Source of the DNA: Podarcis filfolensis
Taxonomy: Eukaryota
Length of the DNA stretch: 64,000 nt
Assembly: GCA_964270895.1 (NCBI GenBank)
Contig: OZ185442.1
Strand: one strand, 5' to 3'
The position numbers were made by a program, and so were the translations under genes. The notes under the pieces are model-generated. The model saw nothing but the letters and a program-made list of their open reading frames with translations. It had not been told where the DNA came from and searched no databases. Positions within the stretch are counted from its first letter, which is position 1. Each line of letters opens with the position of its first letter. Shown piece after piece: positions 27,001 through 64,000 of the stretch.

Positions 27001-30000
27001 AAGTTTTGCCAATTTATGTTGCTGACCTCACCCCCAAGACTTTGCTCCCCTGGCAGCAGGTGCAATTTGAGTCTAAGTGCTGAGAGCCAGAAGTTGTATG
27101 GCAAAACAGCTGCCCAGCATGGCAAAGGGAGTCAAAACTGTAAGAGGCCATAGGCTGCTAACCTGTCAGAGTCACTGGAAACTGCTGAGACAGTGGCAAC
27201 AGAAACCACAGCAGGCTCTGCAGCTCCACTGGTTTCTTCTTCTGGCTTTGAAGCTGCCTGGCACTCATCAACCACTTTAGCAAGCTCCAAAACAGCTCCC
27301 TTTGCCTCCATCAAAGGCTTTGCAACTGTCTCACGGCCTCCCTCCAGAGACTTTGGCTGTTCTTCCACTGTATTTCTAGGCCCTGCCTCAGGCCGGGGCT
27401 CTTCCAAAGTCTCATCAGATCTTCCCACAGATTCAGGTTTATCTGCTGCTGCCACCTCTGAGGTTTCTTTCACCATTTCCTCCTTGCTGGCCATTTCCAA
27501 AGGATTGAGCCTGGTCTCTATCTGATCATCCGAATACCTTTTTGCCATCTTAAACAGAGAATGTGAACACAGTTACTAGAGAACACTTCTCAACTTTATT
27601 TTCTTTTTTCTAGTTATATACAGCAGCCATGCCCAAGCTGGTGCCCTGAAGATGCTTTACCTACAAATCCCCTAATTGTAGGGCCTCATGATGCTGGAGC
27701 ACAGCCTCATGATGCTGGAGCTGTTGGGAATTGCTAGTCCAAAACATTGTCAGGTTACAAGCTTGATATATGTCAAATGTGACATTGGAGCCCTGTGCTG
27801 TTCTGCTGTGGGCTACTTTGCTCTTCACAAAATATTTCCCAAACACATAATAGTTTGGCCAGGGAGGCTTCTGTCTTAAGCCTCAGGTGCTGAATGTACT
27901 TTTTTGATCACAGTGTTTAGACGGCAAGAGTTCTGCTGTGGCAATGTGGGTGATATTCAAGTGCTCCAGCAACACACAGAAATATATGAAGAAAGAAAGC
28001 TGCCTTATGCCAAGCCAGACCAATGGTTCATATAGTTTCTTATCACCACACATTGAGTGACAGCGGCTCTCCAGGGTTTCAAGCAGGGGACATTCCCAGC
28101 CCTACCTAGAGAGCCCAGGGATTGAACTTGGGACCTTCTGCATGCAAAGTAGATGTTCGACTACTAAGCTATACTCCCACTACAACATCCCACATCTCAA
28201 TCAAGCAGCACTCCACACCCTTGCTTACCTCTAAGAGAAAGGGCTCAGAGTCACTCAAGCAGCTTTCTAAATACAGAAGTATTCTCTGCTGGAAAGCTTT
28301 ATAGGAGAAGTTCCAGATGGCTGGATGAGCGAAGTTTTTTTCTCGGATGATGCTCTGGAACATCGACCTCATTTTCTAAGCAAGGGGAAATGTTTTTCAG
28401 TACTTGCAAGCAAATTGCAGCACAGGGCAGAGATAAAAGCAATTTTTGCAGTCATTAGAAGTTTAAACAAAACAAGCCAAACCACCAGAGCAGTCTAGGT
28501 AATGTCAAAAATGCATGAAAGTAATGATGACTAGAGATGTGGACCACAATCTGTAGCAACATGGGCTGCTTGTGGATGCAATTTTTCTCATTGCGTAAGG
28601 GGGACAATAAACTCTCAAGTATTTAAGACACTCACTGAATTGGAGAATGTGGGAAGGACAAACCATGACTCTGCTTTGCAGTGAAATGACCCTATAAGAG
28701 GCACATTTCAACAACAACAGTGACATGAACTCATACCTGCTGAAAGCTCACCTGGGAACTTGGGTCCTTTGACATGTGTTTCCTCAAGATCTTGCTGGCT
28801 TGTTCATATTCTTTGTTTTTTAGACAGGTTATAACAGCCTGGAGAAGAAAGACAAAATAATGGTTTGCAAGGAAGACTTTGGGGGAATGTTCCTAATCTA
28901 AGAAGATACTGTTCGAGAGCTATCCCTCTGACAATTTTCTAGATCTGCTTCACATTTTCAACCCAGTGTGTTTTCATTGTGTAATATTAGACCACTTATT
29001 AAAGAATTAAAAAAAAATTCAAGTAAGGCAAGTTACTTAAATGTCTGTAGGCTAACAACATTGAAATAATGTATGCCTTAGGAATGTCAAGAAGCCAGCT
29101 TTTCCTGGATTGTCCCCGAAGGAAACAAGTTTTCAAAACATGCTGAGTTCCAATAAACTCAGGCACTTCTGAGGAGACATTTCTCTTTCATTTGATCCCA
29201 ACATATAGGAATCGTGCCTCCTTGCTTCTATTAACTTTTGTGAACTTATTTAAAAGTCCAATTTAAGCATGGAGAAAAATAGGCAAGAGTTAATCCTGGC
29301 ATTGAATTAGCACCTTAATTAAACCCTTTCCTAAATATACTGCATTTTGAAACTCAAGACAGCTGTCCTCATACTAACTAGGCTGAGAAACAGTAATCAG
29401 TGCCTACAGAAGAGGAAATGCTAACACTTACTGCTTCCTTTATTTTATTTCTTATTTCTTCTATTATATCAATGCCTATGTCCAATTCATTCTTCATCTT
29501 ATCCAAAAGAACAAGGGCATATTCAAGAGGTGTTAACTTGGTCTTGGTATCAATGGTCCAATCTTCTTCAATCCTAGACAGAAGCTGGATAATCCGCAGC
29601 TGAATGCCAATGCGTTTCTCTAGCACTAGGGGCCTTGCAAGCACAGCTGGAGAAGAACAAGACAGTCAAAACAGCCACTAAGCAAAATCAGATAGTTCAG
29701 CAAACCAAAACAAGGCTTGGGCCAGGGCACCAAAGCCCTGTCCCATATCTTGTATCCCTGGCCATATACAGACAGACGGCTTCATCCCAACATGGCTCCT
29801 TTGGCCCAGGAGTCACTTTGCATTTGCTTGTTTTTTTTGTGTGTGTGATCTACAATATCCTTTAGTATCTATATATACACAAACACTTTTTTTTTTAGTG
29901 TCTTAATCTTTGTGGTGAGAGATCTTGCTGGGGCTCGTTTTGTGGGGCAGAAATGCAGTATGTACAGATTTTATTTATAGACACACAGAAGTAATTACTG

Positions 30001-40949: not shown

Positions 40950-52927
<11,978 letters not shown>

Positions 52928-56112: not shown

Positions 56113-59100
56113 CTTGAGGCGCTCACACTCAATACGCCGCTCATCCACTTCACTTTTCAAGCGTTTATTCTCTTGCTGGAGTCTCTCCATTAGCCCATGG
56201 AGGTGGCTGTGGAAAGAACCTGCGTTAACAAAGGGGAACTAACAGCCATGCAGCAGCCTTTGGACTTAAACATGAGGATAATAGGACAAGGAAAGGAGGA
56301 GCGCCTGAATTTTAAAAACACCTCTTGTCCTGCACAATATTTGGAGATATGGGGTAGAGGCAGGGGAAATTGGGACCCGCAGGTGAGCCTGCTGCCCACC
56401 CCTTGAGGAAGAGCAGAAGTGTGGGAGGCCTGGAGGAGCCCCCCCCCCCCGCCCGTGTCAGCCTGCTGCACTTACTCCCTCTCGCCCGTCAGCTGAGCAA
56501 TTTGCTTGATCTGGTCCCGGATCTTGTCGCCCAACTTCTCGTTCACCTGCCTGCAACGAGACACCAGTTGGGAGGAAGTAACAAGGGGCAAGGAAAGGTG
56601 GTAAGCAGTACTGCTAGAGCCCATTCTCACCCACCCCAGGAGGAGGAGGCGGCCAAGCCAGGTGGCACAAACTCACTTCTGCTCCTTCACCCACTGGCTG
56701 ACGTTGGACACCACCAACTCACTCTCATGATGCAGGCGGTAGCTGTCGGCCCGTGCTGTCTCCAGGGAGGTCTGCAGGGATTCCACCTGCCAGGTAAGAA
56801 GAGGGCAGTCTAGGAAGGCCACCCTGGCATGGTTCCAGAAGTGCAAAGCAACCTCCACTGGCCCCTCCCCTCTCTTGCCCCTAAACTATTCTGAAAGGGC
56901 TAAAGAATGAAGAGCAGAGCCAGATGCAAACAAGACTCCCAAATGGCAACCACAAGGTCTCTGGTGAGCCACAGACCAAGAGTCCTGCTGCAGCAGGCTC
57001 AGAGCTCCACCTGGTGCAGCATCTGGGGGTCCAAACCAGGAAACCCAAAGGCAGAGGATCAGGTCTAGAACATTTCCCAGTGCCTGGTATTCAGAGGTAG
57101 ATTGCCTCTGGACAAGGAGGTTCCACAAAGCTATCATGGCCAACACCTACTGGCACATCTCTTTGTCTTGAGGTTGTCTACTGCCCCATTTAAACCATTC
57201 TAATTGGCAGCCGTCAGCACACCCTGTGGCAGTGAGTGCCATCGAGTTCTACGTTGTGTGAAAAGGAACCTTCTTTGGTCTTCTGCAAATTCATTTGCTT
57301 GCCCCCCCAATCTCAGTGGGTGGTCTCACTGTGCCACCAGCAAAACCTCAACCTTGGTCAAGTTCCACTTGAGGACAGCATCAGACCTTAGAGAGGATGT
57401 GGACAAGCGGAAGAGGATGCAAAGGAGAGTATCAGAGATGCTCAAGAACTTGGCAGGGCAACCGGCCCTGAGGAAAGGCTGGAGGAGAGCAGCAGCGGGT
57501 GAAGGGAGGGACAAGACAAAGCTGGAGGAAGCTGAGCAACAAAGAGAAGGAAAGGAGAGAAAGAACGAGATCAGCTGAGCTCTAACTCTGGAGAGAAGAA
57601 TAAACCAAGGCTTATAGGGGCTGAAGGGTGGGGAGGGGAGGGAGAGAGTATTTGCTGGGCAACCTCAGTGCATGGGGTGCAACCAGCTCTGGCTTTGAGG
57701 CTAGACAGGCTTGTTGCTTTCACAACTCCCTGAGGCAACCAGCCCAGCCTGCTGTGACCTTTGTTGTCACCTCAGCTTGTGAATGTGCCACCCAGAAGCC
57801 ACGAGGACTCTCTTTGGATGCTTCGCTTAGGGCCTTCTTCCCCAATGACTTGGGATCTGCTTTCTTCCTAGGGCAGCAGAGGTGGATGGTGCCCCTGGGG
57901 AGTCCGGGGGATGAGTCTCCTCCCCAAGCTTTACTTACGTCCCGGCTGGAAACCACAAACTTCTGCCGGAGGACGTTGACTTCGTTCTGCAGCTCTTCTC
58001 TCTGCCAAAGCAGCCCCAGGAGAGGACCAAAGGAAAAGCATCAGCCACCTGAGGAGGACTTGGCTGTGTATCCCTCCACCCTGCAGGGAGCCCCTCGTCA
58101 CCTCCTCTGTCGCCTGGTGACACTTCTCCTCCAGCGAGGCCAGCTCCACCTTCATCACCACCAGCTCCTCGTCCTTTTCGGCCAGAGCCCGCTCGGCCGC
58201 CCGGTGCTCCTGCTGCCAGTGCTGCACTTGGCTGCCCAGGGCGCTCAGCCGCTCCTCGGAGGCACAGGCCTGTGAAGACAGAGGAGTTGCCCGCTGGGTG
58301 AGCTTGGGCTGAGCAAGAAGGCCCCTCCAGCCCTCCCTCCCTGGGCCAGGGATGCTCACCTCCTGCTCCCTCTCCCTCTGCATGGCCAGCAGCTGCTGCA
58401 GCTGTTCTCGGGAGCCGCTCAGTTCTTCCTCCAGATGGTCTGCCCTGTGCTGGGCAAGCTGCAGCTCCGCCTGCAGGCAGGACACCTCCCGGGTTCTCTG
58501 CTCCAGCTGCCAAGAAGGGAGGATAGAGGTCATCTCCCGGCTGGCTGTCCTCCAAAAGGTGCTCAGGTTTGGCTTGGCCTTACCTGCTCCACCGCCTCCC
58601 TTTGGCTGGCCTGGCAGGACGTGGCCTGCAGCCGGAGGTCCTGGGCAATGTTCTTGGCTGCAGCCAGGGACTGGTTGTTCTGGCGCTCCTTCTCCTGGGC
58701 AGTGTGCAGCTCAGTGTGGAGCTGGGAGAGGGTGGCCTCCTGGCGCAACACCTGTGGAGTGGGGTGGGGGAGGCAAGCCTGGTCAACCTGCAGGAAGACA
58801 GGCGAGGGCGGGGGGAGGTGGCAGTGGCAGCACTCACCTCTGCTGTCTCCTGCTGCAGCTGCAACTGGGCGTGTTCATACTTTCTGTGGAGCACCTCCAG
58901 CTCCGTCTTCTGCTGTTTCAGCTGCTCACGCAGAACACGGCTCTCTGTCTCCCGCTCTGTGGCGCAGGTGTGCAGGCTCTGGGCTTTCCACTCTTCCTCC
59001 TGCAACTGCAAGGCCAGGGGGCTGTCAGCTCCTGGGAGACTTGGCACATGCCTCCTCCCTGCAGCCCTGCCCAGTGGCTCACCCTGCACTGGCTGCTCTG

Positions 59101-62100
59101 GAGCTGATGCTGCAGCTCCTTGCATTGCTGTACCAGCTGGCTCTCCTGCTCCTTGGCCCTTCGCAGCTGCCGCTGCAGCTCCTCCTCCTGGCGCTTCTGC
59201 TGGCCCAACTCTGCCTGCAACTCATCCAGCACCGACTGGTTCCCTTGCACCTGTGGGCGGCACATACCAGAAGGCTTCAGGCTGCCACCAGGCAGAAGCA
59301 ATTGGCTTGGCTGAGATGGCAGTTGCCCTTCAAGCCCTTCCACTTTCCCCTTCCCCACCTTCAGCTGCAGGCTCTTCAGCCCTTCCCGGCTGCTCTGTAG
59401 CTTCTGCTGCAGCCGAGATGCCTCCTTCTGGTGCTGCTGGGATTCTTGCATGGCTGCCTGGTGCTGCTGCTTTGACTGGCTCAGCTCTCCCATCAGTTGC
59501 TCCAACAGTTCTCTGGGGAAGGCAGAATCAGCAGCAAGAATAAAAACACTGGGTCAAAGTGGTTCCATCTAGACCAGCCTCCTCTTGCTGACAGCAGGCA
59601 GCCCATCACAATGCCTCAAGAGAAGCCCCAAGTGGGACCTGAGGACAACAGCTCCCTTCCCACTGCTCTTTGATCCTTCACAACTAGTAGCCACAGAAGG
59701 CGCCCCTCCTCTTCTGCAATCCTTTCCCCCCATAGAGACTCATGTCAGGGCCTAAGGAGACCCCCACCCCCTGCCATTTGCCACTGCAGCTGCTACCTTT
59801 TCTGCTCCAGCTCTGCTTCAGCAACGGAGAGCCTTTCATTGAGAACCCGGAGCTCTGCCTCCAGCCGGCGGCCAGCCTGTGTCTGATGTGTGAGCTCTGT
59901 GAGCCGCTCACTCAGCTGCTCCTGGGCGTTGTGCAGGCTGCTCTGGGCCAGCAGCACCTGCTCTTCCTGCTGCGCCAGCTCCTGGGCTGTGGGGCGGAGG
60001 GAGGGTCTGAGATGCTGGCAGGAGCCCCAAAGGGGAGCAGAAGAAACCAGCAGGTGGGCTGGCTGAAGCATCCCACAAGGCTCTGGGGAGGTGGGAGAGG
60101 GGATGGGTCCTCGGCTTGCTTCTCACTCCCACCTTTGCTGCTTTGCTCCAACTGTTGCCGCTGCCCAGTATTCTAGTCTCAACGATACTGACAGGAATTT
60201 CCGGCCTCCAGCCTCACACGTCCTGGCCCCACTCACCAGTTTTCTGGTGCTGCTCCTGGCTCTCGTGCAAGTTCCGCCGCAGGGCCTGCACCTCGGCACA
60301 CAATGTGGCACACTCTGCTCTGCTGTGCTCCAGCTCCCGCTGGGCCTTCTGCAGGCTGGCCTCCAGGTGATGGGCACGGGCACGCTGCTGCTCCACTTCC
60401 TGCCCCTTCTCCTGCAGGGTGCTGCAGGCGTGCACCATCTCCGCCTGAGACTTTCGCAGGATTGCATCTCGCTTCTGGATGGCCTGTGGGAGGGAGGGAG
60501 TGCAGAGAGGGAGTCAGCCTCAGACAAGGACCCACACACCCCAGCAAGCCTCCCAACAAAGGAAGGCAGAGGTGCTCACCTGCTCCCTTTGAGCAACCAG
60601 CTTGCGGCTTTGCTTGAGCTCCATCTGCAGCTGCTGGACCTGCTGCTGCTGCTTGTCCCTCTCAGCTGCTGCCTCCTCATACAGGCTTTGCAAGTTCAGC
60701 TCCAGGTGAGCCAAGTCTGGAAAAAAAGGTGGCCTCTTGCTCAGCACCGGCCGAGCCCAGCCCGACGTCTGCCCAGGCCAAGAGTGGGAAGGTCTGGCCT
60801 ACATCCTTGCTACTTCCACTCATTCCTACCGTTCAGAGCGCTGCTCTTCTGCTCAGTGACCCTCACCAGCTCCAGTTTTAAATCCTGCACCAGGCCCTGG
60901 TACTCCTCAGCCTGCCGCTGGTGCTTAGAGCTCTCCTCTTCCTCTTTCAGCAGCTTCTGCTCAGAACAAAGAGAACCGCGACTCAGCCTGGAGCCCTACA
61001 TCTCCAGGGCTCCCCCCAGCACCCCCCAACAAGTGTTGTGGCCCGAGAACAGGGCCTACCTGCCTGAGGGTCTCTGCGGCGACTATCTGGCTTTCATAGC
61101 TGCCGTTAGAGCAGCTGTGAGTTGCTTTGTAAGAAGCGAAGTCCCTGTGCAACGTGGCCAGCGCCGCCTCTTGGTCTAGGAGCTGAAGAGCACACAGCAG
61201 TCAGTCAGAGGAGGCTCCCTCTTCTGCTGCCCGTGGGGTTGGGGGCCGAGGCCAGGCTCACCTGGACACGGTTGGCTGCCAACTGCTCCTGCAGCGCCTG
61301 GATGGTCTCTTCAGAATGGCAGGCGAGCTGCCGGCTCTGGGCCAGCTCCACCTGGGTGTCGCGCAGCTCCCGCATCAGCTGGTCGGCGGTGTCTTCCGCC
61401 CGGCTGGCCTGCCAGCATTTGCCCTTCAGCTCCTCCTGCAGGATCTGCTGCTCCGCTTGCAACCTATAGAGGGCCTCGTCCTTTTCCTTGGCCTGCGACA
61501 ACAGGGCAAGCGCAACTTAGGGCCAGGAGAGCAGCCAGGCTCCCATTGCCACCGCCTTCCCCTCTGAACCGGGGCCCCTACCTGGCAGGCGGCCTCCTCC
61601 TCCAGGCGCTGCAACTGGCACTCCAGCTCCCCGGCTCTGCTCAGCGAGGCCTGGAACTTCTTCTTGTAGAGCTCCAGGCTACCCTCCAGGAGGGTGCTGC
61701 TGCTCTCCACCTGGCCCAGCTGCTCGTGCAGGTGCCGCTCTCGCTCGCTCTGGCAGGACAGCTCCCGCTCCTGCTTCTGGGTCACTTCCTCGTAGTAAAG
61801 GAGCTGTGGGGGGGGAAAGGGAGGTAGGCAGCTCTGGGTGGGAGGGTAGGAGTGGGGTGTGGGGTGCAGCCAGCTGGCTCGGCTCACCTGCTCCTTGAGG
61901 ACCTGGCACTGCTGAAGCAGCATCTCCAGGTCCAGCGTCTGCTTCTCGATCCGGCACTCGCGGGACTGCAGCTTGCTCAGGTTCTCCTGGTTGCGCCCCT
62001 TGCAGATATCCAGCTCCTGCTGCAGGCGCTGCAGCTTGTCTTGCAGCTGGTCCATGTTGGCCTGGTGGTCCTGCCGGGCAGAGAGCTGTTCACCCCGCAG

Positions 62101-64000
62101 CTGCTCCAGGGCGGCGGCCTTGCTCTGGCTCTGCAAACAGCACAGCCGGGGGGGAGGTTGTCATGTGAGTAAGAGGAGGGGTGCCTTGGAGCTTGGTCTC
62201 CTCTCTTCCCCACGCAGCAAGGAATAGATCTGGCCCCAAATTGGCTCCTTCTCCCTGCAGTCAGGGGTTCTGGGTGTGCACCTGGAGGAGGGGCAGCCCA
62301 CAAGAATGCAGGGAGGCTGCAGACCGTTGAAGGGAAGGGACTCAAACTTTAGGGGGTGGCAGGAAACTGAGATCAGCTGGTAGGGAAATGGGGGCCAAAC
62401 TGAGTTTGCAACCACTCCCCACCCCCACCCCCCGCCAGAGGGAACAGACCTTGCTGAGGGAGGACTCCTTCTCGTGCTGGAGCTGGCAGATGAGCCGAGT
62501 CTGCTCCACTATTGCCTTCTCCTGCTCAGAGCAAGAGTCTCGCAGGCTCCTCAGCTCATCCTGCAGGTGGTGGAGCTGCCCCCTGAGGTGGTTCACTTCG
62601 GCCTCTTTACCTGCAAGCTGGCAGTGCCAGGGGACAGATGAGCATCCTCAGGAGGCTGCCAGGCAATCCACACATTCAGACCATCTCATCCTGCCCCTTC
62701 TCTCCCACTCCTGGCCTGGCTCTTTTCCTCTGCGCTATGTGAGGCAAAGTCCTCCGGACCCTCATCCTCGCACTATGGCCCCAACTGCTGCTTGTCAAGA
62801 TAGATCCTGAGCTGCCGACTTATAGTCATTCCAGCTTCTGGAACAGATGAGAGCCCAGGGAACTTCACTGTGTGTTGCCCTGCGATTTGCCTGCCTGTTT
62901 CCAAACACCAACCTGCTGAGGACACACAAGCACCTCCTGTGACCTGCCCTTTGGTGATTGATCCTCTGCTGTCCTTGGGACTCTTCCCCTGCTCAGAGAA
63001 CACTGGGGAGGGAGGGGGGCCTGGCTGCTGGTCACCTTGGGAGCTCCACCCTTTGTGGGCTACTTTTTCAAGACTGTGACAAGGAGGCTCTCCGTCCCCA
63101 AAATGTCACCTCATCCTTCCCTTGCACTCGCTCCTCCTCAGCTGCTTTCAGACATCCCTGAAGTTTCACAATCGTCTGGTCACGGAGATCGACCTGGGGG
63201 AAGAAGGGCCTGACTAAGAACTGGCAGCTTGAGGGGGGGGGGATTCCAGAGACAATGCCTAGAACTTGGAACCTTCCTTGGGTGCTGCTGCAGCAACCTT
63301 CTCCCTCTGGCAGAAAGAGCAGCAGGAGGCTGCTGGGCCAGGAAGAGCCTCGCCTGGGAGGCCTGCAGCAGCTAGCCAGCCTACCTCTCGCTTGAAGGCT
63401 TCCTGCTGCTCCACCAGCGCTGCCATGCTCTGGGCCAGTTGTTGGTGCTCTGCGTGGGCGTCAGACAGCCGCTCCTGGCATTGGGAGAGCTCGTCCTGTG
63501 CTGCTTGGAAGTCGGCCTCCTTCTGCTCCGCCCGCTCTTCGCTCTGCTGCAGCTGCATCCAAGGCCAGGCAAAGCACCACGTGAGAGGATGTGGAGGGAA
63601 GGAGGCCACAGAGAGGCACACCAGGGGGAGGTCTGCCACACACAGAAGTCCCAGTTTAGAGGTGGAAGAAACTGGGGCAAGCTGGGCTGGGATTTGGAAC
63701 AGAGTCTCTCTGGGCTTGGAGTGAGAGAGGAGCAGGAGGAGGAGGAAGAGGAAGGCTCACCTGAGTCTGGCAGGTGGAAAGCTGCTCTTGCAAGGAGGCC
63801 AGCTGCTCCTTGGTCCTCTGGGCCTGGCAAGAAAGAGAGAGAAGGGCTGAGCAGAGGCCTCAACCCCTGAGCACTTGGCAGGGACTTTGAGCTTCAATTG
63901 CCCAGCCGTCTCCCTCCAGTGTGCCTCTTGCTCACACACAACCTTCTGCAGGGCACTTAGCTCCTGGTCTGTCTGTCTGCAGCTCCTCCTGTCTGCAGAG
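56113..64000 (-). CDS. PMFBP1: PMFBP1-like long coiled-coil protein, partial. In-frame exon chain: 62610-62450, 62130-61888, 61803-61582, 61492-61262, 61182-61060, 60956-60830, 60716-60580, 60483-60237, 59986-59797, 59512-59359, 59250-59083, 58999-58838, 58751-58584, 58506-58360, 58269-58102, 58001-57939, 56786-56677, 56550-56476, 56206-56113. Upstream exons: ~63992-63943, 63823-63761, 63552-63385, 63193-63110. The 5' end, the 62611-63109 link and the final exon are unresolved.
   Basis: Nineteen consecutive GT-AG exons keep frame over about 996 Q/E/L-rich codons. The C-terminal [43 protein letters not shown] matches recalled PMFBP1 ([27 protein letters not shown]). The gene is convergent with DHX38, as in mammals. 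Confidence 0.8.

Follow-up and report, generated by a model that had tools for sequence, protein, structure and literature searches.

Does the lizard TRF2 protein still carry the groove on which telomere factors dock and, if so, which residue supports the proline of their motifs? The question is raised by the TERF2 gene in a window of 64,000 nucleotides of Podarcis filfolensis (contig OZ185442.1; by window we mean the whole stretch of DNA that was analysed). In human TRF2 the proline of a docked Y-x-L-x-P motif stacks on the ring of F120 in the TRFH domain (PMC7672075), and the exchange F120A abolishes the binding of SLX4 and MCPH1 peptides (PMC7672075 among other sources). The motif-binding site of TRF2 has been called highly conserved among vertebrates (PMC4770236) and present throughout vertebrates (PMC8653790), and in the literature searched no report of a squamate exception to F120 was found. 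The window gene encodes an Ile at this position and a Trp two residues before it. This belongs to an ancient, lineage-wide remodelling of the docking loop that is concentrated on the proline platform and after which Trp118 was frozen.

The features of the window needed for the argument are the following.

29646-29432, minus strand: exon 2 of TERF2, 215 nucleotides with ag/gt flanks, in which the sequences of exons 2 and 3 of other amniotes are joined; the part of the TRFH domain that it encodes runs from the end of helix 2 through helix 3 and loop L34 to helix 4.

29564..29572, minus strand: codons for I110-E111-E112; the 12 nucleotides for G113-E114-N115-L116 are missing at the boundary 29564/29563.

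29558..29560, minus strand: TGG, Trp118, at the position of human Cys118 (Cys160 in long-isoform numbering).

29552..29554, minus strand: ATT, Ile120, at the position of human Phe120 (Phe162 in long-isoform numbering).

29522..29551, minus strand: remainder of loop L34 with the first part of helix 4, [10 protein letters not shown], a segment that varies among squamates but hardly or not at all among other amniotes.

The minus strand at positions 29572-29522 has the codons att gaa gaa gat tgg acc att gat acc aag acc aag tta aca cct ctt gaa, which translates as [17 protein letters not shown] with IEE-DWTID as its core.

The pairing of the lizard Ile with F120 can be established in several ways. 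A phmmer search with exon 2 against all PDB chains finds the human TRF2 TRFH domain with an expectation value (E) of 4e-8, and its alignment opens a gap of four residues after IEE and sets DWTID opposite human DCSFD, with the Ile opposite F120. The same pairing is reproduced in MAFFT alignments of 16 and of 48 sequences. A third line of evidence comes from the genes themselves, as the codon of Asp117 is interrupted at one and the same point by a phase-1 intron in Anolis and Gekko and in three non-squamates, turtle, gharial and kiwi. In these three, exon 2 ends with GAG GAG GGN GAG AAY YTA G|gt and the next exon begins with ag|AY TGC ACC TTT GA. Anolis and Gekko have the intron in the same phase, their upstream exon ending with GAA GAR R|gt; the exon after it opens with ag|AC TGG ACC GTC GAT in Anolis and with ag|AC TGG ACT ACC GAT in Gekko. 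Because the intron position is conserved, the five codons following it are positionally homologous. The changes from TGC to TGG (C118W) and from TTT to ATT (F120I) are each due to a single base, and the upstream exon lacks at its 3′ end the 12 nucleotides that encode G113-L116. An alignment with the Trp opposite F120 was rejected, since the start of exon 3 is fixed by the conserved phase-1 intron and D-C-T-F-D differs from D-W-T-I-D by single-base changes. The preliminary description of this DNA, which had read F120 as an Ile encoded at 29554-29552, with a new Trp two residues upstream, is thus confirmed on these points by phmmer, by MAFFT and by the intron anchor.

To see how far this loop is distributed we collected 209 TRF2 gene products among the matches listed in one exhaustive profile search and two indexed searches. 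The squamates sampled comprise geckos, skinks, a cordylid, lacertids, a tegu, an amphisbaenian, anguimorphs, iguanians, boas, pythons, vipers, elapids and colubrids. The loop type IEE-[DN]-W-x-[ITVM]-[DN] is found in all 27 squamate species, represented by 53 gene products among the matches listed, and G113-L116 are missing from every one of these species. All 143 non-squamate products among the matches listed carry GENLDC[ST]F[DE]; they come from tuatara (P0168, P0169), turtles, crocodilians, birds and mammals, and two of them also contain a read-through insert. Ile or Leu at this site is therefore not a common trait of non-mammalian TRF2, as tuatara, turtles, crocodilians and birds keep the Phe, and what had been described as a feature of "this lizard" is common to all Squamata. 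The presence of the change in every squamate examined and in no other amniote, tuatara included, shows one origin: the loss of G113-L116, C118W and the replacement of F120 represent a single event on the squamate stem that has been kept since. It dates to after the tuatara split and before the radiation of the squamate crown, the polarity resting on amniote outgroups. A change on the squamate stem has an age of roughly 200 million years.

How the TRFH domain evolved around this loop was studied by comparing alignment columns between the 27 squamate species and 22 other amniotes. Position 118 is Cys in 22 of 22 other amniotes and Trp in 27 of 27 squamates; in no other TRFH column is each group fixed for a residue of its own. 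Position 120, Phe in all 22, holds Ile in 19 squamates, Thr in five (all of them geckos), Val in two and Met in one, while six different residues occur at position 119. In total only 30 of 198 TRFH columns (15%) are invariant in squamates. Of the 70 columns that do not vary in non-squamates, there are 14 in which the majority residue of squamates is another one or is absent, and these cluster in residues 81-131 (11 of 30, against 3 of 40 elsewhere; Fisher p = 0.005). The largest shift is seen in loop L34, where mean column entropy rises from 0.34 in non-squamates to 1.18 in squamates and all eight sites that were invariant have lost their residue. Conservation in the squamate domain is highest in helix 3, which forms the main wall of the groove and retains seven of ten invariant sites.

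These columns can be read against the peptide contacts of the human TRF2-MCPH1 complex, from which our contact list was taken (PMC7672075; contact details also in PMC4334113 and PMC4770236). In this complex the Tyr of the motif lies in a cleft formed by L101 and R102, hydrogen bonds are provided by E94 and S98, R109 clamps the backbone and D81 forms a further clamp (PMC7672075). D81, L101, R102 and R109 are invariant in the 27 squamates, as are Q105 and S108, and E94 is present in 24 of 27; S98 is variable in squamates, and in birds too. Several residues of the deep pocket for the motif Leu, which is formed by helices 2 and 3, are altered, and they are mostly hydrophobic (M83 to I/L, L86 to V, V88 to A, M104 to I/V, L100 to Q), and to judge from the residues the changes lining the pocket at M83, L86 and M104 appear conservative. 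Q84, invariant elsewhere, is highly variable in squamates, and S131 has lost its invariance as well.

AlphaFold2 models of a Podarcis TRFH domain, near-identical to that of the window gene, and of a turtle TRFH domain, built from the same 42-sequence alignment, reach a predicted local distance difference test score (pLDDT) of 84.7 and 84.0, respectively; the loop blocks of the lizard model have values of 80-88. Helix 3 is three residues shorter in the lizard model than in the turtle model, and the predicted structures suggest that the four deleted residues made up the final turn of helix 3 and the beginning of the loop. The adjacent loop had been described as four residues shorter, of which the loss of four residues stands, whereas the stretch from Asp117 to Thr127 still has its 11 residues.

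What do these changes mean for docking? The ages of the TRF2-binding motifs restrict the question considerably. Those of Apollo and PNUTS are found in amniotes, that of NBS1 in placental mammals, that of MCPH1 in primates and that of SLX4 in haplorrhines (Myler et al. 2021, PMC8653790). Therefore a lizard cannot have lost the recruitment of SLX4, MCPH1 and NBS1, as the preliminary description had supposed it might, because these motifs arose only within mammals. The relevant partners are the old ones, Apollo, PNUTS and the YRLGP motif of RAP1, a weak binder at the same TRF2 site which is described as conserved in vertebrates (PMC4770236).

For these partners the Y-x-L-x-P groove may still be in use with a rebuilt proline platform. 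The groove would have retained its cleft for the Tyr (L101, R102, E94), the clamps D81 and R109 and a hydrophobic pocket for the Leu, the aromatic ring would have shifted two residues along the loop from Phe120 to Trp118, and position 120 would have turned into an ordinary variable position. Apollo, PNUTS and RAP1, the last by its YRLGP motif, could then still dock on squamate TRF2, although the affinity or the specificity would probably differ. We regard it as an even call that Trp118 now supplies the proline platform and that docking of the old partners persists in altered form. In human TRF2 the residue Cys160 is reported to lie near the proline of the bound peptide and can be captured covalently by an electrophile placed on that proline (preprint 10.1101/2023.02.01.526591). 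Cys160 corresponds to Cys118 of the short numbering, as F162 does to F120. Since positions 118 and 120 both flank the same peptide proline, an aromatic swap from C...F to W...I is geometrically plausible. The earlier suggestion that the upstream Trp may substitute for F120 gains support from this neighbourhood and from the contrast between an invariant Trp118 and a position 120 that varies among I, V, T and M. Lacertid TERF2-like paralogues are aromatic at position 118 too, with Trp in P0002 and Phe in P0004. As regards the loss of recruitment proposed before, nothing here shows it, the Tyr cleft and the polar clamps being conserved in squamates.

Several points weigh against a rebuilt platform. 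Trp118 could be a structural filler for the deleted Leu116, and experimental tests at these sites are limited to F120A. The strongly increased variability of loop L34 with the loss of all its invariant sites is possibly a sign of relaxed constraint, geckos have the polar Thr at position 120, and Q84 is highly variable.

Some of these same observations would be expected if docking had been lost or relaxed, that is, if the squamate TRFH domain had no useful affinity for Y-x-L-x-P and Trp118 only packed the junction between the shortened helix 3 and the loop. Apollo would then reach telomeres by another route, or its role at leading ends would be covered differently. We doubt that either the loss or this consequence is correct, and nevertheless take both as serious possibilities, because F120A abolishes the binding of every motif peptide tested in human, loop L34, once almost free of variation, has become variable, changes at sites that used to be invariant cluster in the docking region, every gecko carries Thr120, and Q84 and S131 are no longer invariant. 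However, a disused groove would sit less easily with the surface-exposed polar residues D81, R102, R109, Q105 and S108 being invariant in a domain in which so few columns are, with helix 3 as its best-conserved element, and with a Trp118 that is invariant and aromatic even in paralogues. The Apollo and PNUTS motifs reported in amniotes (Myler et al. 2021, PMC8653790) likewise speak for a site in use.

A bolder version of the idea is that squamates gave up docking of the Phe120 type, which is regarded as universal and as essential for bringing Apollo to TRF2, Apollo being recruited through a site of different shape, centred on Trp118 and with a motif grammar of its own, or leading-end processing having become independent of TRFH docking. 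This is rather doubtful in our view. If it were true, the squamates, with about 11,000 species, would represent a natural separation-of-function experiment for TRF2.

That the change is nearly neutral seems unlikely to us. According to this explanation Ile, Val or Met at position 120 is hydrophobic enough for the proline, Trp118 merely compensates for the deleted turn, and docking is essentially unchanged. An aliphatic residue at 120 in most squamates and the conservation of the remainder of the groove would agree with it, and squamate proteins are fast-evolving in general: their TRFH domains are 47-58% identical to that of turtle, compared with 77% for tuatara. On the other hand, F120 and C118 are invariant in the 143 non-squamate products among the matches listed, so the site is not freely replaceable, and the Thr of geckos is polar. 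Moreover, three coupled changes in one loop, followed by the freezing of the Trp, look more like a rebuilt site than like drift.

An artefact, with the exon derived from a pseudogene or paralogue or with a different true counterpart of F120 hidden by misalignment, is effectively refuted and excluded for practical purposes: TERF2-like paralogues do exist in lacertids (P0002, P0004) and some database gene models differ at this junction (P0010, P0048), but the window gene is intact and much closer to the main Podarcis TRF2 than to the paralogue, three alignment methods and the conserved phase-1 intron concur, and the same loop state occurs in independent assemblies of 27 species.

The gene in question was assembled by tblastn against the window with lacertid TRF2 proteins as guides. 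It comprises nine exons between 31186 and 24073 on the minus strand, with GT-AG at all junctions and zero internal stops, and encodes a product of 569 amino acids. The exons, including exon 2 as given above, are located as follows.

31186-30976, minus strand: TERF2 exon 1.

29646-29432, minus strand: TERF2 exon 2.

28838-28752, minus strand: TERF2 exon 3.

28375-28229, minus strand: TERF2 exon 4.

27548-27163, minus strand: TERF2 exon 5.

26965-26597, minus strand: TERF2 exon 6.

25937-25861, minus strand: TERF2 exon 7.

24981-24923, minus strand: TERF2 exon 8.

24231-24073, minus strand: TERF2 exon 9.

The product is identical to the main TRF2 of Podarcis lilfordi (P0032) at 548 of 569 positions (96%), and 76-81% identical to the lacertid TERF2-like paralogue P0002. 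The window thus holds, in intact form, the main TERF2 orthologue of a lacertid like Podarcis, distinct from the lacertid TERF2-like paralogues. The Rap1-binding motif TERF2_RBM (PF16772) was detected in exon 6 at 26964-26599 (E = 8e-16, 57.7 bits against a cutoff of 27) and the Myb/telobox domain (PF00249) in exon 9 at 24231-24076 (E = 7e-15). Pfam finds the TRFH domain (PF08558) in the near-identical P0032, whereas exon 2 alone, too short for the TRF model, gave only noise in Pfam.

TERF2-like paralogues lie on other chromosome-sized contigs in Podarcis lilfordi (P0002), Zootoca vivipara (P0004) and Vipera latastei (P0049/P0051). Their residue at position 118 is W, F and W, respectively. Since P0002 continues into the intron-2 sequence that is also found in the window gene, a duplication at the DNA level is indicated.

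How were the 12 nucleotides lost? The intron between exons 2 and 3 is precisely absent from the window (29432-29646, minus strand) and from Lacerta agilis (L004:1604-1819), and it is present in phase 1 in Anolis (L002:4106-5288), Gekko (L003:2350-2817), turtle, gharial and kiwi. From this distribution the intron loss appears to be a later event on the lacertid side, separate from the squamate-wide shortening by 12 nucleotides. An imprecise intron loss as the cause of the shortening was rejected, because Anolis and Gekko keep the intron and already lack the 12 nucleotides. These were lost exactly at the 3′ end of the ancestral exon 2, with the intron phase unchanged. In kiwi codon 113 is GGT and forms a latent in-frame donor, G|GTGAGA, 12 nucleotides upstream of the donor in use (L006:691-721); the gecko intron begins with gtgagt (L003:2337-2360). 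Hypothetically, a switch to such an upstream donor would delete exactly G-E-N-L and regenerate Asp117. A plain deletion of 12 nucleotides would account for the data equally well.

At the same junction database gene models disagree. The old Anolis model P0048 has an insert D-E-N-K between IEE and DWTVD, which we treated as a gene-model artefact. It corresponds to 12 nucleotides within the Anolis intron (L002:4823-4834) that are preceded by AA instead of an AG acceptor and followed by GT. The insert is probably a micro-exon forced by homology; a real, rare micro-exon is possible. For Varanus komodoensis the models conflict, those of Ensembl (P0010, P0027, P0091) reading G-ECGEPTEQT and that of NCBI (P0029) [11 protein letters not shown]. 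Four Sceloporus models of NCBI named TMED6 (P0005, P0020-P0022) contain the TRF2 TRFH domain and are therefore read-through models of neighbouring genes.

Elsewhere in the window, 49892-50332 on the minus strand is a stop-free stretch of 147 amino acids, whose likeness to the C-terminus of the open reading frame 2 protein of a long interspersed nuclear element was noted by eye only. The GC-rich region at about 57300-63900, also on the minus strand, contains several long stop-free stretches which are coiled-coil-like and rich in Gln, Leu and Glu, and probably represents exons of a neighbouring gene.

The residue generally used to separate the functions of TRF2 is F120 (F162), and a whole amniote order is without it. 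The tuatara, the sister lineage, and all other amniotes examined keep the ancestral loop, and squamates offer a clean evolutionary case of the rebuilding of a docking site, and the aromatic swap from position 120 to 118 is a concrete and cheaply testable hypothesis. Squamate TRF2 is also a natural variant for asking how strictly the recruitment of Apollo needs the canonical platform. In studies with motif peptides or inhibitors it should not be assumed to be mammal-like; covalent inhibitors aimed at Cys118 (Cys160) would have no target residue in it.

Compared with known systems, the lizard domain belongs to the same family and has the same fold as the TRFH domain of human and mouse TRF2 with its docking site for Y/H-x-L-x-P motifs, for which structures with Apollo (PDB 3BUA), SLX4 (4M7C), NBS1 (5WQD), MCPH1 (7C5D) and RAP1 (4RQI) are available. 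The best matches of the lizard model are peptide-bound human TRF2 TRFH domains, with template modelling (TM) scores of 0.89-0.91 at 52-54% identity. Squamates share with human and mouse L101, R102, D81, R109 and largely E94, and the residues of their Leu pocket, several of them changed, are mostly hydrophobic. They differ in having I, V, T or M in place of the proline-stacking Phe120, Trp in place of Cys118 and no G113-L116, and their loop is variable, whereas it is invariant in all other amniotes sampled.

TRF1 possesses a paralogous groove. Its TRFH docking site (F142) binds the F-x-L-x-P motif of TIN2 and also TERB1, PinX1 and Fbx4, and the equivalent Phe lies in loop L34 (Myler 2021, PMC8653790). 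Therefore the aromatic platform is old in vertebrate TRFH domains. The lizard domain is of the TRF2 and not of the TRF1 type, as the match to TRF1 structures is poorer (TM 0.75-0.79, 24-28% identity) and the gene encodes TERF2_RBM. The closest comparison is with the TRF2 of tuatara, turtles, crocodilians and birds, which is orthologous, has the same set of domains and the same exon phases at the site, and in which GENLDC[ST]F[DE] is unchanged.

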